Below are positions 3,141 through 41,991 of a stretch of 42,005 nucleotides of DNA, in pieces. The position numbers and the translations under genes were made by a program. The DNA comes from Octopus sinensis (taxonomy: Eukaryota). Numbering within the stretch: the first letter of the stretch is position 1; every line of letters begins with the position of its first letter. The notes beneath the pieces were generated by a model. That model searched no databases. It had not been told where the DNA came from and saw nothing but the letters and a program-made list of their open reading frames with translations. Where the stretch lies: contig NW_021835195.1 in NCBI RefSeq assembly GCF_006345805.1, forward strand, positions 1-42,005, in the 5' to 3' direction.

Positions 3141-3419
3141 GTAAGTATTATATTTGAAACGAGCTTTGCGTGAGTGATGTGAATATCTGATCTTGTACTT
3201 TCGGGGTACAAGAAAGCAATCACTCACTAGCCGTTGCTTTAATAATCCAGAATTCTACTAGTCAGAAACAACAAGACGCAGACGTAAAATATATATATAC
3301 TACTTTATTCTCTTTCTTGGTAACAATAACAATAAGTGTGTTATCTGATGTCCTTGATTCTGGGCGCGCAAGGCTGAAAGTTAATAGATTGTAATATTTA
3401 CAATGTCCAGCCGCTAAAC

Positions 3420-3760
3420 CAGAAAGGGGTCAAGATGGCGTCGAACAGGGAAGTTGAATGTGGTCGGCAACAATTTGGTTAAAGGCATTCGGCCGACTGC
3501 TGCTATCAACCGGAGAGAATATATGCGTGACCGCCGCCTTCAATCGCTGGGTCCCAAGTCCCCGATGACTGCTGCTAGTGGTCAAACGTTCTACGACCCC
3601 TTGCCTCGCTAACTACCACTACACGATAGGCAAGCGGGTCGTGCTTCCGGTGGTTCGCGCATGCGCGAGAGGGCCCTTCCTTTCTCTGCCTTGTAAGGCA
3701 CCAACACGCGCGAAATACAAATGGACGGTGCGCGCGCGCGCCGTTGTAGGATCACTACAT
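3420..3760. promoter_or_regulatory. CpG-rich island-like segment with YY1, ETS and NRF1-type motifs
   Basis: CAAGATGGCG 3431-3440, CTTCCGG 3644-3650, CGCGCATGCGCG 3656-3667, and a (CG)n run near 3730. Confidence 0.4.
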
Positions 3761-3841
3761 ATTTATATAAACATTTCTATTATATATGTGTCATGCCATA
3801 TATCTGATTGTTTCAATGTGTTGAGTAAGTGAAAAGGGTAC

Positions 3842-6298: not shown

Positions 6299-7109
6299 AA
6301 GATGTGGTTGGTTGTTCATTTGTGGGTAACAGGGAACCATTGAGGTGACTGACTTGCCCTTCGACTGTGAATGGCAGTGTAAATCCATGTTCAACTATCT
6401 CCTTAGATGCACCAAACAATGTCATTTGTGATGCAGGATTGTCTGATATTGCTCAGGAAATCCTTTGACTGGATGGAAGTACCTTCCAGAAGAGGTTGAG
6501 AAGGAGCTAGTAGTGCTGGCAATATTACCTTACTGCCTGGGCATTGCATGCCATTAGTTTCATTTGGAAATTTTAAAGCTTTACAGAAACAATGATTTGA
6601 GTTTAGCACACTAATTTGGACAAAATTATCATTTTCATAAAAATGGGATGGATTATATATGAAAGCAGCTCCAGGATTTGTGAAAAACGAATGTATACAT
6701 TCTCAGTTCAAATTCCGCCAAGGTCGACTTTACCTTTCAACCTTACGGAGTTAATAAATTAAATATCATCATTCCATGCTTTTCGTATGCAAGCCGGTGG
6801 GGCTCGCTCTGTCTAATCATTAAAATGTTTTAATGGCTAAGCATTAAATGCTGCAGCATGTGTTTGCTGATCTTGCAAAAGTCTCATCTCCCTTCTGTAT
6901 TGAGACTCCATCTGACGTGCTGCGGCTTGCCTTTGCTGATCTCGAGAAAGTCCCATCTTGCTTCTGTCTTAAGAAGCAAGATGGAAATATTGTCCAATAA
7001 TATGTAATTTAATGTTTTACATAATATCTGAAGGAAGTAAAAGTTTATATCCACAGTTTATCATTATGAAAATGTAGTTATATTTTCTATTGTTGAATCT
7101 CTGCTTTTT

Positions 7110-7150
7110 AAGTCTTTCCTATATCTTCTACTGTTTCTGTGTCATTTCAG
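7110..7150 (+). promoter_or_regulatory. Splice acceptor of the coding exon of ZNF gene 1
   Basis: Pyrimidine tract plus GTCATTTCAG|AATATGAGATG, conserved at 20410 (+) and 32850 (-). Confidence 0.65.
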
Positions 7151-7505
7151 AATATGAGATGTTAGTGGTATAAAGGAGTTTTTACTTCAGATACATCAGG
7201 AATATTGATCGTCATTTGAAGACTAATGGAAGATGTTATAAATAATATATATAACCACGTTTATAAAATTTATCTATGGTGAAGAACTGAAAAATTCCAT
7301 CTGAATTAGCAGCAACATTTTTTTCCATCACTGCCTGGAATATTTGCTAAAGTATTTCCGATTCAGTCTGAACTTGGAAAAATCTGCAAAGGTGTTTCTA
7401 TTACCTTTAGCTATTGACAAAGACCAAACTTGTGGAAAATCAACAAAGGAATATATAAGAAGAACAGGAAAAATATATTTTGTGCTTGTATACTATAGAA
7501 CAATA

Positions 7506-8619
<1,114 letters not shown>

Positions 8620-8905
8620 AACTGTAATATCTGCAGTAAATTACACTAAGTCAGACCTTTTCCTTTTGAACGGCAGTTTTTAACAAAATTTCTAGTTAAC
8701 TAAACACTTTAAAACTTCATATACTGGTAGAATGTATCAAAATATAACATTTTTTTCTCTTGGCTTTCTTGAGAAAATTGTAATTTGCTTGTTTAACGTA
8801 GTTTAATTTTTCAAATTTTAACCAATCCTATGCCCTCTATTGGGAACGGCAGTTTTTTCTAGCAGTGTCATATGAAATTGTCACCCATAATTATGGCTCT
8901 AGTAT

Positions 8906-9247
8906 CGATCTATTGCATTTCAATCTGTTTTAGGGTTAGGGTTAGGAGTTGAGGAAAGGGTATCTTTTTTTTTTTTTACAAATGTAAATAACCCAATTTG
9001 TTTCTTAAACGAGGGACATATTCATACGGCAAAGAATGTTTTCACCTCAATAGACTTCATTGATTAGTTGAAATTGCAGAAATTGAAGAAATAAAAAACA
9101 ACAAATATCTTACAAACTATAGGATTTTCTCAATAAAGCCAAGAGAAAAAGATGTTTTATAAACACATTCTACCAGTATACGAAGTTTAAAATTTTTTAG
9201 TTACGTGGAAATTATGTTAAAAACTGCCGGTCAAACCGAAAAGATCC
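8906..9247 (+). mobile_element. Dispersed TTAGGG-containing repeat, copy 2
   Basis: Colinear with 4103-4436 (GATCTATTGCATTTCAATCTG...CAAACCGAAAAGATCC). Confidence 0.7.
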
Positions 9248-9528
9248 TAAATTCTTTCTGGAGTAGTTTGAAGAATTAGTTAGAAAATTCAATACTTGTC
9301 CTTCTCATCAAGTAAACTCTTAGCAGGAAAAGAATAAGAAAAATGCCTTTTATCTTAAACAAAAAAAAAAGGAAACTGTTTGAATGGCGGTGCCCCAGCA
9401 TGGCCACAGCTCGTTTGCTGAAACTTGAGGAAAATAGAAACAAATAAATAAATAAAACTAAGGGAGATCACTCCCGTTTTCATTTCTAATACTCTTTAAA
9501 CGATTGAATTTGGATTTAATAAAAATAA

Positions 9529-10036
9529 TCTATATATATAAAACTGTAGTTGTGTGAGTGTCTGTCCCCTTCGATTTAGATTCCTAACTACTCCCACATT
9601 TTGCGGTGCAGTTTAACCAAATTTGGGTATCTTATAGTCGTGATTCATATCGAGCCCGTCTGAGTATTAGCGCGCGTCTACGATGAGTCTACGATTTTAA
9701 AAATAATTTAACATAATTTTTTATTCCATTTTAATGCATAATTTTTCGTGTCAATGGCGGCGGAGTTGGCGTCCATGGTCACACCTGCACCTGTTTGCTT
9801 CTCCCCCTTCTTCTCCCTCGTGAAGCTGTGGGGAAGGGAGTGTACGGAAATCAACGTCGTAAAGCGTTGTCAAGGAGACCAGCGTTCTTTTAGAACAACG
9901 ACTTCATGGCTTGAAGACACCAATACAGAAATGGCTAAGAAAGCCCGAATTGGCATCTATAAGGGAAGTAACTCTCTAAAAATGCTTATATAGTTATTTC
10001 CTTACAAACCCGAGCAACGCCGGGCGATACTGCTAG
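9529..10036 (+). mobile_element. Non-autonomous Helitron, copy B, with different internal cargo
   Basis: A|TCTATATAT ... CCCGAGCAACGCCGGGCGATACTGCTAG|T; ends shared with copies A and C. Confidence 0.8.
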
Positions 10037-10269
10037 TATTGAATAAGACTTTGCGAGTCAGCTTTACATAATTTCTTGGGTATTGGTTAGAAAACAACCG
10101 ACGGGTTTCTCACCTTAACCTTAAAAAGAAATAGACGAAGAACGACACTAGAGGTTTAAAGAGGAGATCGTAAGAGTAGCAAAAAAAACTGAATATAAGT
10201 AGTCAGCATATACTTTTGTATTTTTTGCCATTATTCGTGGTTTTTTCATTATAATTCACATTTCGTAAA

Positions 10270-10278
10270 CGTAATTAT
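10270..10278 (+). repeat. 9-bp target-site duplication (left), CGTAATTAT
   Basis: Identical to 16476-16484 and directly abuts the GG terminus. Confidence 0.9.
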
Positions 10279-11029
10279 GGTACTTGTCTATTGTCGTGGT
10301 CCCGGTTTTGCACACGCGAATTCGCGCGCGCGCGCGTCAGACGTAGGTACTCGATACTCGAGATCCTACGAGGTGACTTGCGCATGCGCAGTGCGCGATT
10401 CGCGCATGCGCGTTAAACCCCCCCCCCCCCCGGAAAAAAAAAGGATTTTTTTAAAGATACCTTTCTGCTTTTTAAGACAAAAAGGTGTTGGATTTAACTA
10501 AAAATATATATATGTGTGGTGGTGTGTGTGTGTGTGTATATATAACATATTCAATTTTACATAAAAAAATTACATAGTCGCTTTCCTCGCGGATTTACAG
10601 ATAAATGAATTAATTACTATTTTACAGAATAAATTAATTAATTAATTATATAAATTAAATAATTCTTGAAAATTAATTATTATTAATACTCGAGATCTTA
10701 CGAGGTGACTTGCGCATGCGCAGTGCGCGATTCGCGCATGCGAGTTAACCCCCCCCCCCCCCGGAAAAAGAAAAAGGATTTTTTTAAAGATACCTTTGTT
10801 CGCTTTCCTCGCGGATTTACAGATAAATGAATTAATTACTATTTTACAGAATAAAATTAATGAATTAATTATATTAATTAAATAATTCTTGAAAATTAAT
10901 TATTATTAATAATATTTTTGAACAAGTAAAAAGTAATTACTTTTTTTTACAGAAACGCGAACGGGGAATTTTTCAGTTTAAAGTTTATAAATAAATACAT
11001 TTCATGTGTAATGTAAAATAGTAGTCAAT

Positions 11030-13198
11030 TAATTAAATACCTTCTTTTTATGGGGTATTATTCTTGTTCAAACTCGTCACATATTTGTAACTTTTCGATG
11101 TAAACCTTTCAATGTAAGTCTTAAAAAGTTGCGGCAGCTTAGCAGAAATGTCACGTTATAATTCTACCATGCAATGGTTTCAATACACGCGGGAGATCAT
11201 ACCCCTTCAAACTTTATATCATTCTGAAACATCTTTCAGAATATTCATCACACGACCGTTTTCATTTTGTCCAAATATTTTTTTCACAGAAATTCATCAG
11301 AATTGTGGCGATTTTATGACAGTGTAGCAAATTAGTAATCAACTAATTAAATACCTTCTTTTTCTGGGGTATTATTCTTGTTCAAACTCGTCACATATTT
11401 GTAACTTTTCGATGTAAACCTTTCAATGTAAGTCTTAAAAAGTTGCGGCAGCTTAGCAGAAACGTCACGTTATAATTTCTAACTATGCAATGGTTTCAAT
11501 ACACGCGGGAGATCATACCCCTTCAAACTTTATATCATTCTGAAACATCTTTCAGAATATTCATCACACGACCGTTTTCATTTTGTCCAAATATTTTTTT
11601 CCACAGAAATTCATCAGAATTGTGACGATTTTATGACAGTGTAGCAATTAGTAATCAACTAATTAAATACCTTCTTTTTATGGGGTATTATTCTTGTTCA
11701 AACTCGTCACATATTTGTAACTTTTCGATGTAAACCTTTCAATGTAAGTCTTAAAAAGTTGCGGCAGCTTAGCAGAAATGTCACGTTATAATTTCTAACT
11801 ATGCAATGGTTTCAATACACGCGGGAGATCATACCCCTTCAAACTTTATATCATTCTGAAACATCTTTCAGAATATTCATCACACGACCGTTTTCATTTT
11901 GTCCAAATATTTTTTTTCACAGAAATCATCAATCAGAATTGTGGCGATTTTATGACAGTGTAGCAAATTAGTAATCAACTAATTAAATACCTTCTTTTTC
12001 TGGGGTATTATTCTTGTTCAAACTCGTCACATATTTGTAACTTTTCGATGTAAACCTTTCAATGTAAGTCTTAAAAAGTTGCGGCAGCTTAGCAGAAATG
12101 TCACGTTATAATTTCTACCATGCAATGGTTTCAATACACGCGGGAGATCATACCCCTTCAAACTTTATATCATTCTGAAACATCTTTCAGAATATTCATC
12201 ACACGACCGTTTTCATTTTGTCCAAATATTTTTTTTCACAGAAATTCATCAGAATTGTGGCGATTTTATGACAGTGTAGCAAATTAGTAATCAACTAATT
12301 AAATACCTTCTTTTTCTGGGGTATTATTCTTGTTCAAACTCGTCACATATTTGTAACTTTTCGATGTAAACCTTTCAATGTAAGTCTTAAAAAGTTGCGG
12401 CAGCTTAGCAGAAATGTCACGTTATAATTTCTACCATGCAATGGTTTCAATACACGCGGGAGATCATACCCCTTCAAACTTTATATCATTCTGAAACATC
12501 TTTCAGAATATTCATCACACGACCGTTTTCATTTTGTCCAAATATTTTTTTCCACAGAAATTCATCAGAATTGTGGCGATTTTATGACAGTGTAGCAAAT
12601 TAGTAATCAACTAATTAAATACCTTCTTTTTCTGGGGTATTATTCTTGTTCAAACTCGTCACATATTTGTAACTTTTCGATGTAACCTTTCAATGTAAGT
12701 CTTAAAAAGTTGCGGCAGCTTAGCAGAATGTCACGTTATAATTTCTACCATGCAATGGTTTCAATACACGCGGGAGATCATACCCCTTCAAACTTTATAT
12801 CATCTGAAACATCTTTCAGAATATTCATCACACGACCGTTTTCATTTTGTTCCAAATATTTTTTTCCACAGAAATTCATCAGAATTGTGCCGATTTTATG
12901 ACAGTGTAGCAAATTAGTAATCAACTAATTAAATACCTTCTTTTTATGGGGTATTATTCTTGTTCAAACTCGTCACATATTTGTAACTTTTCGATGTAAA
13001 CCTTTCAATGTAAGTCTTAAAAAGTTGCGGCAGCTTAGCAGAAATGTCACGTTATAATTTCTAACTATGCAATGGTTTCAATACACGCGGGAGATCATAC
13101 CCCTTCAAACTTTATATCATTCTGAAACATCTTTCAGAATATTCATCACACGACCGTTTTCATTTTGTCCAAATATTTTTTTCCACAGAAATTCATCA
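11030..13198 (-). repeat. Tandem array in the left arm: ~316-bp unit, 6 full copies and 1 partial
   Basis: Marker TACCTTC at 11038, 11352, 11668, 11988, 12304, 12620, 12934; units nearly identical. Confidence 0.95.
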
Positions 13199-13846
13199 AT
13201 GCTGTTCCTTCTGCTGTCTTCTCTCTCCTTCTCCCTTATTTACTTCAGGCAATCTCCATCTATCGCAAAAAAGGGATTTTGAAAATCTTTGTCATGATTT
13301 TAATTCCGAGGAGTATCTTTTAACATTTTTTTATTTTCGAATATCTCATTCTATATGTGGCCTTTTTATTTTTCTCAAGTTAATAAGTGCCAGTAATGAG
13401 AGGAACATATCACAATTTTCAGTTTCCTTTACATGTTCACATAATAAATAATATTATGTCATTTTCTGTTAGGAAAGGCATAATTAATTTCAGTTAATGT
13501 TTGTCTAATTACCACAGTATTATGTAGATAACAGTTTGTTTATAAGGTTTTTATTGCCTACTTCAGAAAGCACATGACAAATATACTGAATCGGACAAGA
13601 ATCTAATAAGACTCAACATCATGACAGTCAAATCCTTATTCATGTATTTTCGTTAACTTGGGTTTCAGCCCAAAACAATCTTTCATAGTAGGACTACAAA
13701 TGTTTTTGAAAGAATATATTTATCATCAGAATATATATACTTTTCTCACACTACAATTAAGATATATTTATTTTAAATCGTTCATTTTTCTCCCCCCCCC
13801 ACAACAAAATTAGTTTGAAAGAGGGACAGAGAAAGTTCTAAAATCT

Positions 13847-13856
13847 AACCAATCAG
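13847..13856 (+). promoter_or_regulatory. CCAAT box upstream of the transposase
   Basis: AACCAATCAG about 100 bp before ATG 13951. Confidence 0.35.
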
Positions 13857-13950
13857 AGCTAACTGAATGATAGTCAGCTAACTGATACTGAAAATAACTT
13901 TATTTTCAGTTTATCTTCATCAGTTGAACTGTGAGTTAAATTAAGAAAAA

Positions 13951-14829
13951 ATGTTGTATGAGATAGAAAGCATCGTAAAAGACTTTGACAGTATCTATTC
14001 ATTCCTAAAGGACAAAATGTTGAGTTCCTCAACTCCAATTGCTCAAAATGCCATAGAGAGATGACTCTTATAAACACAACCAGGAAAAATTTTTCGCTGC
14101 CCAACTCACAAAGGGGAAAAAGAGTCGATTAGAAAGAAATCGTATCTCGAAAATAGCAGATTGAAACTGCACGATTTCATTCATGTTATATATTGTTGGG
14201 GCAGTAACCTAACAATAACAGGAGCAATAGCAATGACTGGATTGTCAAAATCTAGCGTTATTCAATGGTATCAATACATGCGAGATATCTGTAGCAATAA
14301 TCTAATCAACAATCCATACCAAATTGGTGGTGTCGGACACGTTGTTGAAGTAGATGAAAGTCTGATGTGTAAGAGAAAATACAATAGAGGGAGAACGCCA
14401 CAAGAGAGATGGGTTTTTGGAGGTTACGACAGAGAAGACAAAAAAGGCTTCATACTGTTCGTAGCTGACCGTTCCTCGGAAACTCTGCTACCCATCATCA
14501 AAAAATTTATTAGACCGGGCACAACAATTCATTCGGATTGCTGGCCCGCCTATAATGGTATTGCAGAAATGGATGTGACACCAAAATACATCCATTTCAC
14601 AGTAAACCATTCCCAGAATTTTGTGGATCCGCTAACAGGTGTACTCACAAATTCTGTGGAATGTTACTGGAAGAATGCCAAAAGAAAATTTAAAACGATG
14701 ATGGGGGTACATTCCACCATGGTGGACTCGTACCTTGATGAGTTTCTGTGGAAGGAACAATATGGGCAAACTGCACACGATTGCTTGATGAATATTCTGA
14801 AACATCTTTCCGAATGGTATAGAGTTTGA
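13951..14829 (+). CDS. Merlin/ISXO2-like DDE transposase; N-terminus broken by two compensating frameshifts (~14040, ~14085)
   Basis: VVEVDES, RWVFGG, TIHSDCW..Y, HFTVNHSQNFVD, TNSVECYW, YLDEFLW. A reconstructed N-terminal CSKC...FRCPTH zinc ribbon spans frames. The frame is open from ~14074 to TGA 14829. Confidence 0.9.
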
Positions 14830-14852
14830 AGGGGTATGATCGCCCGAATGTA

Positions 14853-15730
14853 TTTTTGGACAAAATGAAAACGGTCGTGTGATGAATATTCTGAAAGATG
14901 TTTCAGAATGATATAAAGTTTGAAGGGGTATGATCTCCCGCGTGTATTGAAACCATTGCATAGTTAGAAATTATAACGTGACGTTTCTGCTAAGCTGCCG
15001 CAACTTTTTAAGACTTACATTGAAAGGTTTACATCGAAAAGTTACAAATATGTGACGAGTTTGAACAAGAATAATACCCCAGAAAAAGAAGGTATTTAAT
15101 TAGTTGATTACTAATTTGCTACACTGTCATAAAATCGCCACAATTCTGATGAATTTCTGTGAAAAAAAATATTTGGACAAAATGAAAACGGTCGTGTGAT
15201 GAATATTCTGAAAGATGTTTCAGAATGATAAAAGTTTGAAGGGGTATGATCTCCCGTTGTATTGAAACCATTGCATGGTAGAAATTATAACGTGACATTT
15301 CTGCTAAGCTGCCGCAACTTTTTAAGACTTACATTGAAAGGTTTACATCGAAAAGTTACAATATGTGACGAGTTTGAACAAGAATAATACCCCATAAAAA
15401 GAAGGTATTTAATTAGTTGATTACTAATTTGCTACACTGTCATAAAATCGCCACAATTCTGATGAATTTCTGTGGAAAAAAATATTTGGACAAAATGAAA
15501 ACGGTCGGTGATGAATATTCTGAAAGATGTTTCAGAATGATATAAAGTTTGAAGGGGTATGATCTCCCGCGTGTATTGAAACCATTGCATGGTAGAAATT
15601 ATAACGTGACATTTCTGCTAAGCTGCCGCAACTTTTTAAGACTTACATTGAAAGGTTTACATCGAAAAGTTACAAATATGTGACGAGTTTGAACAAGAAT
15701 AATACCCCAGAAAAAGAAGGTATTTATTAA
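14853..15730 (+). repeat. Tandem array in the right arm, inverted relative to 11030-13198, ~3 copies
   Basis: GGTA of the marker GAAGGTA at 15091, 15404 and 15719. Confidence 0.95.
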
Positions 15731-16209
15731 TTGACTACTATTTTACATTACACATGAAATGTATTTATTTATAAACTTTAAACTGAAAATTCCCCGTTCG
15801 CGTTTCTGTAAAAAAAAAGTAATTACTTTTAACTTTGTTCAAAAAATATATTAATAATAATAATTTTCAAGAATTATTTAATTAATATAATTAATTCATT
15901 AATTTTATTCTGTAAAATAGTAATTAATTCATTTATCTGTAAATCCGCGAGGAAAGCGACCAAGGTATCTTTAAAAAAATCCTTTTTTTTTTCCGGGGGG
16001 GGGGTTAACTCGCATGCGCGAATCGCGCACTGCGCATGCGCAAGTCACCTCGTAAGATCTCGAGTATTAATAATAATTAATTTTCAAGAATTATTTAATT
16101 TATATAATTAATTCATTAATTTTATTCTGTAAAATAGTAATTAATTCATTTATCTGTAAATCCGCGAGGAAAGCGACTATGTAATTTTTTTGTGTAAAAT
16201 TGAATATGT

Positions 16210-16250
<41 letters not shown>

Positions 16251-16475
16251 TTTTAGTTAAATCCAACACCTTTTTGTCTTAAAAAGCAGAAAGGTATCTT
16301 TAAAAAAATCCTTTTTTTTTTCCGGGGGGGGGGGGTTAACGCGCATGCGCGAATCGCGCACTGCGCATGCGCAAGTCACCTCGTAGGATCTCGAGTATCG
16401 AGTACCTACGTCTGACGCGCGCGCGCGCGCGAATTCGCGTGTGCAAAACCGGGACCACGACAATAGACAAGTACC

Positions 16476-16484
16476 CGTAATTAT
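16476..16484 (+). repeat. 9-bp target-site duplication (right), CGTAATTAT
   Basis: Identical to 10270-10278. Confidence 0.9.
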
Positions 16485-16852: not shown

Positions 16853-18568
16853 GGTAAAATTACAGATTAACACCCGCACGATTTTCACTAAAAAAAAAAA
16901 AAAAAAACTCGGATTTTTTGCGTGGAATCAAATACCCTGACCTCCTAATATGCTGCAAATCCCATATTTTGGTCCGGAATTTCTCCGGAAGGGGGGGGGG
17001 TGACACCCCCCCCCGGAATTTTCACAAGGAAAAAAAATCAGATTTTTTGCGTGGAATCAAGTACCCTGACCTCCTAATATGCTGCAAATCCCATATTTTG
17101 GTCCGGAAGGGGGGGGGTGTTACCCCCCTCCCGGAATTTTCACAAGGAAAAAAAGAATCAGATTTTTATACATGCATAGACACATCCTTAATTAAACTAT
17201 TGACCGCCTTAAAACGGGTTTTAACAGAGAAATATTACTATAATGGATAATATAAGCATATAACTACTTATACACACATACAATAAATACAGACACACAC
17301 ACACACATTAGTCACACATATAGTCACATATACACACGTGTGTATGATTGGTGTATGTGATCGCGGTGGTGGTCATTTGTGCAGCTAAAAGCATGACAGT
17401 GCCATTTATATAATTAATTCATTAATTTTATTCTGTAAAATAGTAATTAATTCATTTATCTGTAAAATAGTACAAATATTCTGCAAATCCGCGGGGGAAT
17501 CGCTATGTTGTTACTCAGCCAGCTAGAAATAGCAGCCAGATTTTCCTCCAATAACACATGCACGCTATTGGAAAGACATCCTCCCAAAGTTGTTGTATGA
17601 ATGCATGCGTATAGTAATTGTGTCTGTGTGTCCGACAGAAGGTGCAGATAAAGGTGCATGCGAATACAACAGAAATACAGGTAAAAATTCAGAGAAACTG
17701 CTACTTACCTCTTGCTGTCAAAAAAATGGATTAATTCTCAAGGGTTCCGCAAGAAGTTGCAAAACTGCTAAAATCGGCAGTAATTTTTAATTCTCCTGTG
17801 CAGATATGTGTGCATAAGACTATTAAATTATTGCACAGGGGTTCCTCGAGCCATTGGAATGTTTGAATTACGCTGTGTGGTTTCAGTTTCTAATTTTTGC
17901 TTCTGATCTCTCTTTGCCCCCCCCCCTCTCTATCTCAAACTAATTTTTGTATAGGTGGAGGTGTGGTGGGGAGACAGATGAATGATGTCTCATTCTCTGA
18001 TATATATATATATAATGAACCATTTCTTAAACATACACGATATAGTCTATAAATTTGGGATGTTTTTGAAAGATAATATATTTTATCATCAGAATATATA
18101 TACTTTCTCACACTACAATTAAGATATATTTATTTTAAATCGTTCATCTTTTCCCGCCCACAACAAAAATTGGCGCGAAAATTTTTTTAAATATCAGCGA
18201 AATGAACAACTGAGATAGAGAGGGGGGGGGCAAAGAGAGATCAGAAGCAAAAATTAGAAACTGAAACCACACAGCGTAATTCAAACATTCCAATGGCTCG
18301 AGGAACCCCTGTGCAATAATTTAATAGTCTTATGCACACATATCTGCACAGGAGAATTAAAAATTACTGCCGATTTTAGCAGTTTTGCAACTTGCGGAAC
18401 CCTGGTTTAGCATAACAGTATGTTTTGCTGAGAATTAATCCATTTTTTTGACAGCAAGAGGTAAGTAGCAGTTTGTCTGAATGTTATCCATTACATTATC
18501 CATTATAGTAATATTTGTCTGTTGAAACCCGTTTTAAGGCGGTCAATAGTTTAATTAAAGATGTGTCT

Positions 18569-18644
<76 letters not shown>

Positions 18645-18929
18645 CATGTGTATATATATATATTATATATATATATACATGTATATATATTTATATATAT
18701 ATATACGTGTGTATATATATATATATTTATATATATATATATATACATGTGTATATATATATATATTTATATATATATACATATGTATATATATACATGT
18801 GTATATATATATATTTATATATATATTATATACACATGTATATATACACCTGTATATATATATATATATTTATATATATATGTATACACATGTATATATA
18901 CACCTGTATATAAATATATATATAAACAC

Positions 18930-18971
<42 letters not shown>

Positions 18972-19589
18972 TATATATATAATATATATATATATACATG
19001 TATAGATACATCTTTAATTAAACTATTGACCGCCTTAAAACAGGTTTCAACAGACAAATATTACTATAATGGATAATATAAGCATATAAATACTTATACA
19101 CACATTAGTCACACATATAGCCACTATACACACACTGCAAGAATATATTTATTTATAAAGTTTAAACAGAACATAGAATGAAATGTATTTATTTATAAAC
19201 TTTAAACTGAACTTCAATTGTTTTATAAACCTAACAGCGAACCTCACGTAAATACACGAAGTTGACGACTTTCACTTCTGACAGCTAAAAGCATGACAGT
19301 GTGCCAAATCTTCTTTTGCGCAATAATATATCAATAATTTGTTCACACTTCAATTTACTATTTTCTAGAAATGTTTCTTTTCTAAATTATTGATATATTA
19401 TTTTTTTTTTTCCTTGTGAAAATTCCGGGGGAGGGGGGTCACCCCCCCCCTTTCCGGACCAATTCCGGACCAAAATATTGGATTTGCAGCATATTAGGAG
19501 GTCAGGGTACTTGATTCCACGCAAAAAATCCGAGTTTTTTTTTTTTTTTCTTAGTGAAAATCGTGCGGGTGTTAATCTGTAATTTTACC
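16853..19589. mobile_element. Non-autonomous GG...CC TIR element, probably Merlin-related
   Basis: ~185-bp TIRs (GGTAAAATTACAGATTAAC... / ...GTTAATCTGTAATTTTACC). Internal blocks are homologous to the Merlin element (17410-17500, 18060-18180, 19175-19210). No TSD found. Confidence 0.7.
18575..18996. repeat. Compound (TA)n microsatellite
   Basis: Direct inspection; flanked by 80-bp inverted repeats. Confidence 0.95.
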
Positions 19590-19790: not shown

Positions 19791-20774
19791 TTTATTACAG
19801 TAGATATTCTATTTGTTACTTGTGTCTATCGTTTCAGTCATTTGACTGTGGCCATGCTGGAGCACCACCTTTTAGTCGAGCAAATCGACCCCAGGACTTA
19901 TTCTTAGTAAGCCTCTTTCCATGCTTCCTGAGATTCGCCAACACTACACCTGATTTTCTCCCCTCCATACACACGCAAACCTGTATCTGACTCGTACACT
20001 GTTCACTTCCCAGACATTTGTACATTACTGTATCTAATTTATACGCATTTTTGACAAGTTGTGGTGCACCTGAGCACTGTATACAGTAATTTCATTATTA
20101 TTTTAAAAGTCGTGAACACAACCTAATTTCATTAATAGACCTGTTCAGCCAGGGATGATTCCGGGCTAAACAACAGTGACTTATCACATTTCTGAAGATA
20201 GTAGGAAGTTATTGTCCAATATTTTGTAGTTTAACAATTTACATAATATCTGAAGGCAAAGGAACGGAAGTCTGTCTATAGAGACTAATTATTCGGGTTA
20301 AGGTTTATATAAACAGTTTATTATTATGAAAATGTAGTAATATTTTCTATTGTTGAATCTCTGCTTTTCAAGTCTTTCCTATATCTTCTACTGTTTCTGT
20401 GTCATTTCAGAATATGAGATGTTAGTGGTATAAAGGAGTTTTTACATCAGATACATCATGAATATTGATCATCATTTGAAAACTAATGGAAGATATTATA
20501 AATAATATATATAACCCTGTTTCTATTACAAATCTATGGTGAATAACTGTAAAATATTTCTTTGGAATTAATAAGAACGTTTGTTTTCTTCATTGCCAGT
20601 ATTTTACATTCTGTTTGAATTTGGAAAAATCTGTGAAGGTCTTTGTATTATCTTCAGATATTCGAGAAGATCAGATTTGCTGTAAATATAGCAGTAGAAG
20701 TATTTGAATCAACAAAGACATTTATAAAGAAGAAAATAAAAATATATTTTGGGGTCGTATACTGCAGAAGAATA

Positions 20775-21823
20775 ATGAATCCGCCGGAGATGACAAGAGA
20801 AAGAGAAAAATTATCAGACCAATGTGATATCTGTAAAAAGACTTTTCTAATACAGCAAATCTCACTGTTCACAAGTGTATTGATCCAAGTGGAAAGCAAT
20901 ATCGCTGTGATATCTGTGGTAAATCATTCTCTAAAAAATATAACCTTACTCATCACAAATACATTCATACAGGAGAGAAACCATATCAATGTGGTATTTG
21001 TGGTAAATCATTCTCTAATAGGAGTAGCCTTACTTGTCACAAATACATTCATACAGGAGAGAAACCGTATCACTGTGACATCTGTGGTAAATCATTCTCC
21101 CAAAAAAGTCACCTTAAACCTCACAAATACATTCATACAGGTGAGAAATCATATCAATGCGATATCTGTGATAAATCCTTTTCACTAAGGAATGATTTAG
21201 CTAAACACAAACTTTCACATACTCATGAAAAGCCGTATCACTGCGAAATTTGTGGTAAATCATACTCTCAAAGAAGTCACCTTGGTTCTCACAAATACAT
21301 TCACACAGGAGAGAAACCATATCACTGTGATATTTGTGGTAAATCATTCACTCAAAAATGTAACCTTGATTCTCACAAACACATTCATACAGGAGAGAAA
21401 CCACATTACTGTGATATTTGTGGTAAATCATTCTCTCAAAAAGGTAGCCTGACTTCTCACAAATCCATTCATACAGGAGAGAAACCATATCACTGTGATA
21501 TATGTAATAAGTCCTTTTATATAAGAAGTTCTTTAACTAAACACAAACTTATTCATGCTGATGAGAAACCATATCAATGTAGCATTTGTGGTAAATCATT
21601 CACTCAAAAATGTAACCTTACTCATCACAAACACATTCATACAGGTGAGAAACCATATCAGTGTGATATCTGTGGTAAATCATTCACTGGAAAAAGTAAC
21701 CTTAGTCATCACAAATACATTCATACAGGAGAGAAACGATATCACTGTGATATCTGTGAATCATTCTTTCATAAAAGTAACTTTAATAGACACAAATACA
21801 TTCATACAGGAGAGAAATCATAG
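20775..21823 (+). pseudogene. C2H2 zinc-finger gene 2: 12 fingers, 1-nt deletion in finger 1 (pseudogene or consensus error)
   Basis: MNPPEMTREREKLSDQCDICKKT, then ACTTTTCTAAT (4 T) vs ACTTTTTCTAAT (5 T) in gene 1. The shifted frame 20846-21823 is open for 325 codons of finger repeats. Confidence 0.85.
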
Positions 21824-22620
21824 CACTGTGATATCTGCAGTAAATCATTCTAAGTCTATTCATAAAGGAGACAAACTATGTCACTGTGATATCTGTGGTA
21901 AATCATTCTCTTGGGAATGTGCTATATGTACTCATAAATGTATTTATACAAGAGAGAAGCCCTATCACTGTGATATCTGTGGTAAATCATTCTCTGTGGA
22001 ACAATATTTAACTAATTACAAATTCATTCAGACAGGAGAGAAAGCATAGCACTGTAATATCTGCAGTAAATCATTCTGCGTAAGAAAATATTTTCGTCAC
22101 AAATCCACTTACATTGGGCAGATATTGTATCATTGTGATCATCATCATCATCGTTTAGCGTCCGCTTTCCATGCTAGCATGGGTTGGACGGTTCAACTGA
22201 GGTCTGGGAAGCCAGAAGGCTGCACCAGGCCCAGTCTGATCTGGCAGTGTTTCTACAGTTGGATGCCCTTCTTAACGCCAACCACTCCGTGATTGTAGTG
22301 AGAGCTTTTTACGTGCCACCGGCAAAGGTGCCAGACGAGGCTGGCAAACGGCCACGATCGGATGGTGCTTTCTACGTGCCACCAGCACGGAGGCCAGTTA
22401 GGGTGGCGCTGGCTCTGGCAACATTCGGATGGTTCTCTTATGTGCCACCGGCACTGGTATCACAACTTCAAATTCCATTGATGTTGATCGATTATGATTT
22501 TGATATCTGTAGTAAATCATTCTCTTAGGATTATGTTGTTTAACTAATTTTAAATGCATTCATACAGGAGAGAAGGCATATTGCTGTGTTATCTGTGCAA
22601 AATCATTCTCTTAATGTAAT
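21824..22620 (+). pseudogene. Decayed fingers 3' of ZNF gene 2, interrupted by an RTE-tail insertion
   Basis: [33 protein letters not shown]..., with stops and indels. Confidence 0.7.
22137..22500 (-). mobile_element. RTE-type 3' end / derived SINE
   Basis: Reverse complement of the (GAT)n-tailed element. Confidence 0.75.
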
Positions 22621-28739: not shown

Positions 28740-30000
28740 AGATCCTGGGATCCCTGAGCGTGTCCAGCAGAGGATAACTGATCACGGCTGGGAACTGGAG
28801 TGTAATACATTTGTGTCAAAATAATATATCCACAAGAAAACAGAGCAAATTAATATAATCAATATTGTTTGAATAAAAAACACACATCGTAATTAGTGAG
28901 TTGATGCAAATGAAGAAAATGTGAAAAATGAATTTATTTTGTAAAAAGTAATACATTTGCTGTAATTTATTCACCAGGACATCTGTTTTATCATTGATAT
29001 TGTTATTGATCAATATGAATAAGTATATGTTTAGTTAAGGTAGATTATTGAGAGAATGATTTAGCACAGATTACACAGTCATCAGAATCTTCTCCTGTAT
29101 GAATATGTTTGTGTTTAGTTTATTATTTCTCTCTATGAAAGAATGACTTGTCACAGATGTCACAGTGATATGGTTTCTCTCCTGTATGAATGTATTTGTG
29201 ATGAGTTCAATATTGTTCCACAGAGAATGATTTACCACTGATATCACAGTAATAGGGTTTCTCTCCCGTATGAATACATTTATGAGTATATACAGCAATA
29301 CTATATTTGAGTATATATAATGAAAATCGAAATCGATCAACATCAATGGAGATTGTAGCTGTGATACCAGTGCCGAAGGCACGTAAGAGAACCATCCGAA
29401 CGTGGCTGTTGCCAGCGCCGCCCCGACTGGCCTCCGTGCTGGTTGCACGTAAAAAGCACCATCCAATCATGGCCGTTTGCCAGCCTCGCTTGGCACCTGT
29501 GTCGGTGGCACATAAAAAGCACCATCCGATCGTGGCCGTTTGCCAGCCTCACTTGGCACCTGTGTCGGTGGCACGTAAAAAGCACCATCCAATCATGGCC
29601 GTTTGCCAGCCTCGCCTGGCCTCCGTGCTGGTGGCACGTAAAAAGCACCATCCAATCGTGGCCGTTTGCCAGCCTCGTCTGGCACCTGTGTCGGTGGCAC
29701 GTAAAAAGCACCCACTACACTCACGGAGTGGTTGGCGTTAGGAAGGGCATCCAGCCTTAGAAACATTGCCAGATCAGACTGGGCCTGGTGCAGCCTTCTG
29801 GCTTCACAGACCCCAGTTGAACCGTCCAACCCGTGCATGGAAAGCAGATGCTAAACAATGATGATGATGATAGCTCCTTCTTGAGAGAATGATTTGCTGC
29901 AGATATCCCAGCGGTATAGTTTCTCTCTGGTATGAGTTAACTTATGATTAGTTAAGTATTTTCATTCACAGAATGATTTACTGCAGATATCACAGTGCAT
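28740..30000 (-). pseudogene. Decayed distal fingers and 3' trailer of ZNF gene 3, displaced by insertions
   Basis: HTGEKPYYCDISGKSFSVEQY etc. The trailer 28740-29050 is homologous to 22620-22900. Confidence 0.65.
29323..29872 (+). mobile_element. RTE-type 3' end with an expanded 63-bp tandem unit
   Basis: AAAAAGCACC markers at 29451, 29514, 29577, 29640, 29703; (GAT)n tail. Confidence 0.8.
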
Positions 30001-31560: not shown

Positions 31561-31676
31561 CTCAAGATTCAGTAAATGTTGGGCAATCCTTTTAGACAAA
31601 TATTTCACAAGAATATCGTTTCTCTGCTGCGTGAATGTATCTATGAGAGGTTAAACTGCCTTGAGAAAGAAATGAT

Positions 31677-32533
<857 letters not shown>

Positions 32534-33284
32534 TTATATATTTCTCTGTTGATTCAAATTCTTCTACAGCTATAATCACAGCAAATCTGATCTTTGTGAA
32601 TATCTGAAGCTAATACAAACACCTTTGCAGATTTTTCCAATTTCAAGCAGAAGTTCAGATACTTTTGTAAATATTCCTGGCAATGGAATAAAGCAAATGT
32701 TGCTATTAATTCTAAGGAAATATTTCAGTTATTCACCAGAGATTTGTTATAGAAACAGGGTTATATTTATTATTTATAATATAAGTGATGATCAATACTC
32801 ATGATGGATCTGATGTAAATACTCCTTTATACCACTAACATCTCATATTCTGAAATGACACAGAAACAGTAGAAGATATAGGAAAGACTTGAAAAGCAGA
32901 GATTCAACAATAGAAAATATAACTACATTTTCATAATGATAAACTGTGGATATAAACTTTTACCCCAATAATTAGTCTTTAAAACTTATTTTGTGATTAA
33001 AGTTATATTATACAACCTTGTGTAATGTCCACATATGCACAGCTCGTCCACCTTCAAGTATTATGTAAAATGCTAAACTACAAAATACTGGACAATAACG
33101 TTGTACTGTCTTAGAAAACATGATAAGTCACTGTTGTTTAGCCCTAGGTCACCCCTCACTGAGTAGATCCATTCAGGAAATTAGTGTTCACGAGTGTCAT
33201 GACCTTTAGAACAGATCAAACATAAATATCACTATAATTTAGTCACTAACCACAATACACACACACACACACACACACATATAC

Positions 33285-36462: not shown

Positions 36463-37080
36463 GCAGTTGAGGGAACCTGTGGAAGAGGTAGACCCAGGAA
36501 AACCTGGGACGAGATGGTGAAGCACGACCTTCGAACTTTAGGTCTCACCAAGGAAATGACTAGAGACCGAGACCTATGGAAGTATGCTGTGCGTGAGAAG
36601 ACCAGTGAGAACAGTCAAAATCAAACCAAATCAACATCAGTGGAAATTGCAGCTGTGGTTAAGCAAACCATCCGATCGTTTGTCCGTTGCCAGCCTCGCC
36701 TGACCCCTGTGCCGTTGGCACGTAAAAGCACCATCCGCTCGTGTCCGTTGCCAGCCTTGCCTGGCCCCCGTGCCGGTAGCACGTAAAAGCACCATCCGTT
36801 CGTGTCCATTGCCAGCCTCACCTGGCCCCTGTGCCGGTGGCACATAAAAACACCATCTGTTTGTGGCCGTTTGCCAGCTCTGTCTGGCACCTGTGCAGGT
36901 GGCACGTAAAAGGCACGCACTACACTCACGGAGTGGTTGGCGTTAGGAAGGGCATCCAGCCGTAGAAACGCTGCCAAATTTGACTGGGCCTGATGAAGCC
37001 TTCCGGCTTCACAGACCCCAGTTAAACCGTCCAACCCATGCTAGCATGGAAAACGGACGCTAAATGATGATGATGATGAT
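36463..37080 (+). mobile_element. RTE LINE 3' end: ORF C-terminus, repeat-containing 3' UTR and (GAT)n tail
   Basis: GRGRPRKTWDEMVKHDLRTLGL...DRDLWK is an RTE C-terminal signature. Confidence 0.8.
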
Positions 37081-41159: not shown

Positions 41160-41991
41160 CTAGCAGAATTGCCCGGCGTTGCTCGGGGCTGAATTGCTTG
41201 AAAGTACTGAATTATGATGATTAATCAGGCAAATATTGATATAAGTTTACGGTGGGAGATAAGGACTTAACGATCAAACGTGTGCCATTGCATTGTTTTG
41301 GGGGAACCAAATTTCTGATGAGCATTATAGGGGCACCAACTTTAAGTTTGAGAAAGTGTGGTGGTAGTCCGGGGTGCTCAATGGAATTGAGTACCTCTAT
41401 TGTATAGTTGATGACGTCCTCTGGGTCAGGAGTTGTATCGATAGACTGATATACATAGAATTCCCCAGGAATGAGTTTTAGCATTTCATCATTAATATGG
41501 TGAACAGTTTTATTCCTCGGGGCCAGTATAGCCTTTTTGCCAATCCAATCCAAATTCTGATAATTAACTTGTAGATCTGGGAACACTGCATCTCTGAGAT
41601 CAGAAGGCGTCTTAACAATGGTACAAATGGAATCGATGGCAATATTACCATTTTCATCCCCTGGTATTTTGCCTTCGCCAAGTGCAAGGAGGGTGTGAGG
41701 AAATGCTGCTGATGTGATATTACGTCGCATATGAGCACGCATATTGGTGTGAAGTTTGAGAGTTACTTCCCTTTATTTAAAAAAATATGCATTAAAATGG
41801 AAAAAAATGATGGTAAATTATTTGTAAAATCATAGACTCATTGTAGACACGTGCTAATATCCAGAAGGGCTCGATATGAATCATGACTATAAGATACCCG
41901 GTTTTGGTTAAACTGCATCGCAAAATGTGGGAGTAGTTAGGAATCTAAATCGGAGTAGACAGACACACAACCTTTCTTTTATATATAAATA
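41160..41991 (-). mobile_element. Helitron deletion derivative, copy C, carrying a PIF1-family helicase fragment
   Basis: Same ends as copies A and B, with the 5' TC mutated. Confidence 0.8.
41221..41742 (-). pseudogene. Helitron Rep/Hel PIF1-like helicase fragment
   Basis: (HTN)MRAH...ILAPRNKTVHHIN...GLPPHFLKLKVGAPIMLIRNLVPPKQCNGTRLIV; truncated on both sides. Confidence 0.85.

Follow-up and report, generated by a model that had tools for sequence, protein, structure and literature searches.

Previous studies define the Merlin superfamily of DNA transposons by GG ends, a target-site duplication of 8-9 bp, and a DDE_Tnp_IS1595 domain (PMC8101967, citing Feschotte 2004), and in the original description the inverted ends are 24-462 bp long (PMC8101967). 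Here we analyzed a 42,005-nt stretch of Octopus sinensis DNA (assembly GCF_006345805.1, contig NW_021835195.1, positions 1 to 42,005 of the forward strand; hereafter the window), which carries a Merlin element at 10279-16475 with inverted ends of 2,920 bp and 1,624 bp, beyond the originally described range. Our reading, to which we give a probability of about 85%, is that the element is a single insertion and belongs to an octopus family of Merlin cut-and-paste transposons with an IS1595/IS1016-related DDE transposase, and that its arms grew as proposed below. The length of the inverted ends is not a defining feature of Merlin.

Kilobase-scale ends have been recorded in zebrafish Merlins. The S1 Table of PMC8101967 summarizes Repbase 23.11, and the zebrafish families are compared here by their table entries, not by their sequences. 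According to these entries, Merlin-1_DR has 1,000-bp inverted ends with mirrored arrays of 44 bp ×4 (200-387 and 10141-10328), Merlin-N5_DR has 1,000-bp inverted ends with mirrored arrays of 113 bp ×5.2 (531-1114 and 3193-3775), and Merlin-2_DR has three mirrored repeat blocks, among them a pair of 79-bp arrays, one with 12.5 copies (847-1832) and the other with 9.7 (12117-12880) (PMC8101967). As far as the entry goes, the Merlin-2_DR arrays would imply arms of ~1.8 kb with unequal arrays. The authors report internal tandem repeats in several Merlin families (PMC8101967). In O. vulgaris, a 2026 repeat annotation counts 18 Merlin families (2.19 Mb) and two families with 11 recent insertions, and does not describe their structure (PMC13282606).

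Long inverted arms that are rich in tandem repeats and able to fold back are also shared by the Foldback (FB) elements of Drosophila and by Tetris. FB arms consist almost wholly of short repeats reaching near the termini, and the FB protein is unrelated to that of Merlin. The arm repeats of Tetris can seed satellite DNA, according to a passage of the Tetris report (PMC4079207). In the case of Galileo from Drosophila, the ends reach ~1.25 kb and sequence is exchanged among copies; in D. mojavensis, the ends are lengthened by internal ~210-bp tandem repeats, the numbers of which differ between the ends of one copy, and Galileo recruits the spacer beside the transposase gene into the end (PMC3573991).

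The octopus element starts at 10279 with GGTACTTGTC, and the reverse complement of GGTACTTGTC ends at 16475, giving the 5'-GG of Merlin at both termini. The flanking 9-bp target-site duplication, CGTAATTAT, is perfect, is of a length found in Merlin (8 or 9 bp), and was generated by a 9-bp staggered cut at integration. The terminal 30-mers are identical and have exactly two matches in the 42-kb window, at both termini and on opposite strands, where dinucleotide-preserving shuffles lead one to expect 0 matches. Between the arms lies a center of 1,653 bp (13199-14851), which encodes a Merlin transposase of ~290 aa. Its intact 222-codon open reading frame (ORF), taken with the upstream sequence, matches DDE_Tnp_IS1595 (PF12762; E = 2e-19), scoring 70.6 bits where the curated Pfam cut-off is 27, and this is the sole Pfam match. 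The domain is one that Merlin shares with bacterial elements of the IS1595/IS1016 group. Searching by protein gave 690 homologues, the best of which all carry PF12762; the top one is P0001, the uncharacterized protein LOC115210589 of O. sinensis (98% identity), followed by proteins of O. bimaculoides. The original prediction, made from the letters of the window, had assigned the element to Merlin and seen its GG...CC ends and perfect 9-bp duplication; the assignment is borne out by the domain, the GG ends, the duplication, and the inverted ends, and the predicted coordinates and sizes proved accurate on re-measurement.

A candidate catalytic triad in the 222-aa ORF, assigned by alignment with eight relatives, consists of D65 (14353-14355), D126 (14536-14538), and E167 (14659-14661), which are located in the conserved blocks VEVDES, HSDCW, and SVECYW, respectively; K174 is invariant in the same alignment.

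The two arms are near-identical, with 97.3% identity over 1,643 columns, a shared 1.63 kb, when 10279-11910 is compared with the reverse complement of 14852-16475. The left arm (10279-13198) extends beyond 11910 to 13198 via extra repeat units that the right arm (14852-16475) has in smaller number. According to Tandem Repeats Finder, the left array (11015-13198, score 4165, 97% matches) has 6.9 copies of a 316-bp unit and the right array (14855-15744, score 1680, 96% matches) has 2.8 copies of a 314-bp unit. The outermost unit is truncated in both arrays, to 264 bp in the left and 263 bp in the right. Closer to the ends, a ~330-bp subterminal module occurs twice per arm, the second copy without ~110 bp. 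In the left arm, 10354-10455 pairs with 10686-10787 and 10578-10688 with 10800-10911, within which 10578-10633 pairs with 10800-10855; mirrored in the right arm, 15983-16067 pairs with 16314-16398 and 15861-15972 with 16078-16189. All of this agrees with the anatomy first proposed, namely near-identical arms of 2.9 and 1.6 kb, duplicated subterminal modules, and a ~316-bp array of unequal copy number, and "Foldback-like modular arms" is fair as an anatomical description. The ~1.6 kb of unique central DNA stood as to size, but its last ~115 bp (14737-14851) turned out to be a diverged piece of the repeat unit, 78-83% alike.

Palindromes are present in the arms. The palindrome GCGCATGCGC occurs three times per arm, in the left arm at 10380, 10402, and 10712. 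The palindrome TGCGCATGCGCA is located in the duplicated module at 10379-10390, 10711-10722, 16031-16042, and 16362-16373, with GCGCATGCGC also at the above 10402, at 16341, and, beyond the element, at 3657. TGCGCATGCGCA matches the binding consensus known for NRF1-type transcription factors, and it could act as a promoter element or transposase-binding site.

We located the gene of P0001 on the O. sinensis chromosome record CM016862.1 (locus L001), where positions 7899-12199 hold a 4.3-kb copy of the element that is 92-97% alike and has flanks unrelated to those in the window. Both ends of this copy carry the terminal 18-mer of the window element, and it has mirrored ~1.3-kb arms with ~1.9 units each and its own 9-bp duplication, GAATTTCTA. 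The mirrored design therefore belongs to a mobile family and did not arise through misassembly of the window, and LOC115210589 is the transposase of the octopus Merlin family and no host gene. The size of the array varies between copies and between arms. Some details of the L001 copy are its own: four extra bases (GACC) separate the right terminus from the duplication GAATTTCTA (12199-12212), the right terminal region is without 14 bp that the other three arms have, and the right arm has an additional 22-bp duplication of the TGCGCATGCGCA motif.

Aligned over 1,673 bases, the centers of the two copies are 98.4% identical, with 27 substitutions between them. Relative to L001, the window gene has 1-bp deletions near 14038, 14071, and 14084 and an in-frame 3-bp deletion near 14017. 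The three 1-bp deletions, all of which sit in short base runs, shift the frame for ~46 nt over the N-terminal CxxC...C/H region, resulting in two stops. The C-terminus of the window transposase (…EQYGQTAHDCLMNILKHLSEWYRV) is the version conserved in relatives, and in L001 the last ~23 residues of P0001 are replaced as a result of a 2-bp deletion near 14754 in window coordinates. Thus, as assembled, the transposase of each copy is intact where that of the other is broken. Because of its broken frame, the window copy would need transposase from another copy, unless the three deletions are homopolymer sequencing errors. The element had been called young, which suits the perfect duplication and a center only 1.6% from a paralogous copy, but not the 2.7% difference between the arms or a transposase frame that, as assembled, is broken by three 1-bp deletions, nor would it mark a demonstrably active copy.

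Other searches for related sequences returned nothing: exact-protein look-ups with two window ORFs, one of 55 aa from the array and the other the 222-aa core, matched no record, and the terminal 27-mer and a conserved 36-mer of the unit had 0 matches in the metagenome contigs scanned. The orthologous or empty site was sought via the neighboring zinc-finger protein (7344-8393), a search that was swamped by generic C2H2 proteins and gave no orthologue.

The origin of the 316-bp unit can be traced to the transposase gene. The segment 14737-14851 aligns at 78-83% across every unit-to-unit junction, with ~120 bp per 316-bp unit homologous to the 3' end of the gene; hence, the unit derives from the gene 3' end plus ~200 bp of downstream spacer, of which it is a decayed copy. 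The part of the ORF that matches the unit encodes the C-terminus conserved in relatives. The left arm stops at 13198, exactly where the homology starts, so the inverted repeat extends into coding sequence. The outermost truncated unit (263-268 bp) has the same breakpoint and the same private variants in 4/4 arms of the two copies, which places the growth and shrinkage of the array in its interior. The variants of the units are mosaic, and 11278-11594 is 100% identical to 14852-15168 despite a different rank from the end; such mosaics would be the expected product of unequal exchange or slippage.

We propose that the arms grew in five steps. In step 1, a segment from ~95 nt inside the transposase 3' end through the downstream spacer would have become the 316-bp tandem unit. 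In step 2, the right-hand end, including the array, would have appeared in inverted orientation on the left as well, carrying the inverted repeat into the coding sequence. In step 3, the ~330-bp subterminal module would have been doubled in each arm. In step 4, the arrays would grow and shrink independently in each arm by unequal exchange or replication slippage, reaching 6.9 and 2.8 units here and ~1.9 and 1.9 in L001. In step 5, gene conversion from arm to arm and from unit to unit would keep repeats within a copy closer to one another than to their counterparts in other copies.

The comparison of the two copies bears on the last step. In the 736-bp subterminal part, the four arms (left and right of the window copy and of L001) show 8 copy-specific sites, 1 side-specific site, and 0 cross sites. 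Similarly, 10/10 window units are set apart from 4/4 L001 units by five fixed substitutions and a fixed 4-bp indel. At three of the fixed unit sites, L001 has the state of the real gene end, and both arms of the window copy have therefore been taken over by the derived state. Covering two copies, the comparison is suggestive, not conclusive, of concerted evolution through arm-to-arm and unit-to-unit conversion, and independent mutation would not easily be the source of such a pattern.

Several points weigh against this reading. The pattern of shared sites could also arise if the array re-expanded from one unit in each lineage and was then copied between the arms. The first three steps are numbered with no sequence implied among them. 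The counts of 6.9 and 2.8 are those of the assembly, in which a 316-bp array may have been collapsed or expanded. The 1-bp indels between the centers of the window copy and L001 are one-sided, with 6/6 being deletions in the window (13450, 13718, 13822, 14038, 14071, and 14084), and may be homopolymer consensus errors of the window assembly rather than real mutations. As assembled, both known copies carry a damaged transposase; hence, present-day activity is a candidate property only.

The alternative that survives best concerns the role of the arms. The modules and 316-bp units might be putative secondary transposase-binding sites or promoter elements, selected for better transposition, and not neutral by-products. 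Passages on the long ends of Galileo document multiple binding sites (PMC3688188; PMC3573991), the module carries GCGCATGCGC three times per arm, and in 4/4 arms both the module and the truncated outermost unit are conserved. We nevertheless consider functional arms rather unlikely, given that the unit is decayed coding sequence plus spacer and that its number varies between 1.9 and 6.9 without visible constraint. Furthermore, the interior of the element contains no further instance of any 11-mer from the terminal 75 bp, with one mismatch allowed, and no layout of the inverted repeat/direct repeat (IR/DR) type was found.

A composite origin, in which a truncated second Merlin lies head-to-head beside a complete one or is nested in it, is very improbable. 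The left arm does resemble an inverted partial copy of the right end, and this may be how the arms of the family began, but the duplication flanks the outermost termini only, the terminal 18-mer and 30-mer occur solely at the two ends with no internal GGTAC termini, and the same architecture has transposed as a unit to a second locus. An artefact of assembly or reads (a foldback chimera or a mis-joined palindrome) is scarcely credible: long array-bearing inverted repeats are easily misassembled and the one-sided excess of 1-bp deletions relative to L001 suggests an imperfect window consensus, but a perfect 9-bp duplication brackets the whole unit, the arms are 97.3% and not 100% alike, the 1.65-kb center is unique and holds a transposase gene, and L001, another O. 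sinensis locus, has the same mirrored design with a duplication of its own.

Two Merlins outside the octopus family show how such ends may look in relatives. The L003 Merlin comes from a metagenome contig, and its transposase is 61% identical; the element totals 3.9 kb and shows GGTAC ends, inverted ends of ~354 bp, and a 9-bp duplication (TTCGATGTT). The L004 Merlin, with a 51% identical transposase, has GGTAC ends and ~79-bp inverted ends. The short ends of both indicate that the long arms are derived in the octopus family and are not a trait of the wider clade. Between its transposase gene and right end (12537-13026), L003 has GGAATACCCAAC motifs, densely clustered and in both orientations, which form another type of internal repeat. 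P0007, a 60% identical O. sinensis protein at locus L002, was set aside as a comparison, as no clear inverted ends surround its gene and the inverted matches there are a multi-copy repeat.

The octopus element shares with the Merlin superfamily a ~290-aa DDE_Tnp_IS1595 transposase, GG ends, an 8-9-bp duplication, and a single gene between inverted ends, but differs in that its ends of 1,624 and 2,920 bp overlap the last ~31 transposase codons. By their table entries, the zebrafish families Merlin-2_DR, Merlin-1_DR, and Merlin-N5_DR have kilobase-scale ends and mirrored internal arrays as well, which are unequal in Merlin-2_DR as in the octopus; the differences lie in the host phylum, in units of 44-113 bp compared with 316 bp, and in the derivation of the unit from the transposase gene, which the table does not report for zebrafish. 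The original prediction had considered that a Foldback-type Merlin may be undescribed unless an existing family already has this architecture; since the three zebrafish families have such arms, the claim falls at the level of the superfamily. There is no octopus Merlin entry in the S1 Table of PMC8101967; the octopus element is possibly an uncatalogued family, with an architecture already known in Merlin.

With Galileo, the octopus Merlin shares the same two routes of end growth, tandem repeats and the recruitment of spacer. However, Galileo belongs to the P superfamily, with a P-type (THAP) transposase and a 7-bp duplication (PMC3573991), whereas the octopus element has a Merlin-type transposase and a 9-bp duplication, and its sole Pfam match, DDE_Tnp_IS1595, places it outside Galileo/P. 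In addition, the longest ends of Galileo occur in copies without the transposase gene, whereas the long arms of the octopus element flank the gene. Measured against the features of FB known in general, it is not a strict FB element either, as it has a Merlin-type protein, a unit of 316 bp, and arrays that begin 736 bp from each end. The coordinates of the features are collected in Table 1.

Table 1. Parts of the Merlin element and its target site, in window coordinates.
Feature	Position	Strand	Basis
Left copy of target-site duplication, 9 bp, CGTAATTAT	10270..10278	.	direct reading
Whole Merlin element, 6,197 bp, GGTAC...GTACC ends	10279..16475	+	terminal 30-mer search and self-BLAST
Left terminal and subterminal section, 736 bp	10279..11014	+	repeat-family search, four-arm alignment
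Left tandem array, 6.9 units of 316 bp, orientation opposite to right array	11015..13198	-	Tandem Repeats Finder, unit alignment
Unique 5' spacer ahead of the transposase ATG, presumably with promoter and 5' untranslated region	13199..13950	+	
Transposase gene, ATG at 13951, stop at 14830-14832	13951..14832	+	three-frame translations, alignment to L001/P0001
Intact 222-codon ORF with catalytic core DDE_Tnp_IS1595	14161..14829	+	Pfam, alignment with 8 relatives
Putative proto-unit: last ~31 codons, stop, and ~20 nt of the transposase gene	14737..14851	+	78-83% homologous to array unit junctions
Right tandem array, 2.8 units of 314-317 bp	14852..15744	+	Tandem Repeats Finder, unit alignment
Right terminal and subterminal section, mirror of 10279-11014, duplicated modules included	15745..16475	-	repeat-family search, self-comparison, alignment
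Right copy of target-site duplication, 9 bp, CGTAATTAT	16476..16484	.	direct reading
Flanks brought together without the element: …TTTCGTAAACGTAATTAT / AGCAATAAAAAC…			

Around the insertion, the left flank (9879-10040) is 97% alike to 8256-8417 of L002, which is on another O. sinensis chromosome, so the element inserted in or beside a dispersed repeat. Element-related DNA elsewhere in the window is limited to stretches of 113 bp and 34 bp, and no solo array or related miniature element was found in it. The 113-bp stretch lies in the 5' spacer, where 13700-13809 is 92% alike to 18060-18168, 1.6 kb right of the element, and may derive from another repeat or be left over from a related element. 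The 34-bp stretch is a perfect match of 10972-11005 and 15754-15787 to 19178-19211, in flanking DNA beside a long (TA)n tract (18568-19008).

The element is located in a cluster of C2H2 zinc-finger copies at 7037-8652 (+), 20297-22093 (+), and 31596-32978 (-), which are 76-79% alike and have an 84-bp finger periodicity. A long open frame is kept only in one copy (7344-8393, 349 codons), and the others are split into several frames. Because these paralogues, taken at 7037-8417 (+), 20297-21685 (+), and 31668-32963 (-), are only 76-79% alike and the copies of the element are ~2-5% apart, the zinc-finger duplications and the inversion long predate the element. The perfect target-site duplication, in turn, indicates that the window copy has exchanged no end with another copy. 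The suggested relevance of the element to the inversions in this cluster was therefore not upheld, as the duplication is intact and the paralogues are far older; long inverted arms might promote breakage in principle, but we saw no link to the rearrangement of the cluster.

Related 61-63-bp tandem repeats at 29441-29712 and 36667-36912 adjoin zinc-finger copies. Similar spurious ORFs (…FYVPPA…) are present beside the copies as well, at 22184-22528, 29071-29466 (-), and 36621-37034 (-), with no Pfam family above the cut-off, and the repeats and these ORFs probably belong to a dispersed repeat family. A 173-codon ORF at 41221-41742 (-) matches the Pif1 helicase 2B domain (E = 2.7e-16); the gene of which it is probably a fragment would encode a Helitron-type or Pif1-like helicase.

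The octopus family adds a mollusc example to the kilobase-scale, internally repetitive inverted ends that arise independently in P/Galileo, FB, and zebrafish Merlin. As such ends arise independently in several DNA-transposon superfamilies, the length of the ends is a poor classifier. For octopus genomics, the description is of value in annotation, since such elements are easily broken into "satellite", "unknown inverted repeat", and "transposase gene". The points of most note are the origin of the unit from the transposase 3' end, which can be read directly because the unit still aligns to it, and the signs of arm homogenization; two copies already display a change in array size together with this homogenization. 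We put forward only tentatively, as a claim more apt to fail than to hold, that the octopus family has the longest inverted ends known for Merlin (to 2.9 kb), that these ends were built from its own coding sequence, with the last ~31 codons seeding the 316-bp unit of the mirrored arrays, and that the arms are homogenized by intramolecular conversion. If the arms are indeed derived from coding sequence and homogenized by conversion, the family would be a natural system in which to follow the rise of foldback-type architecture and of proto-satellites.

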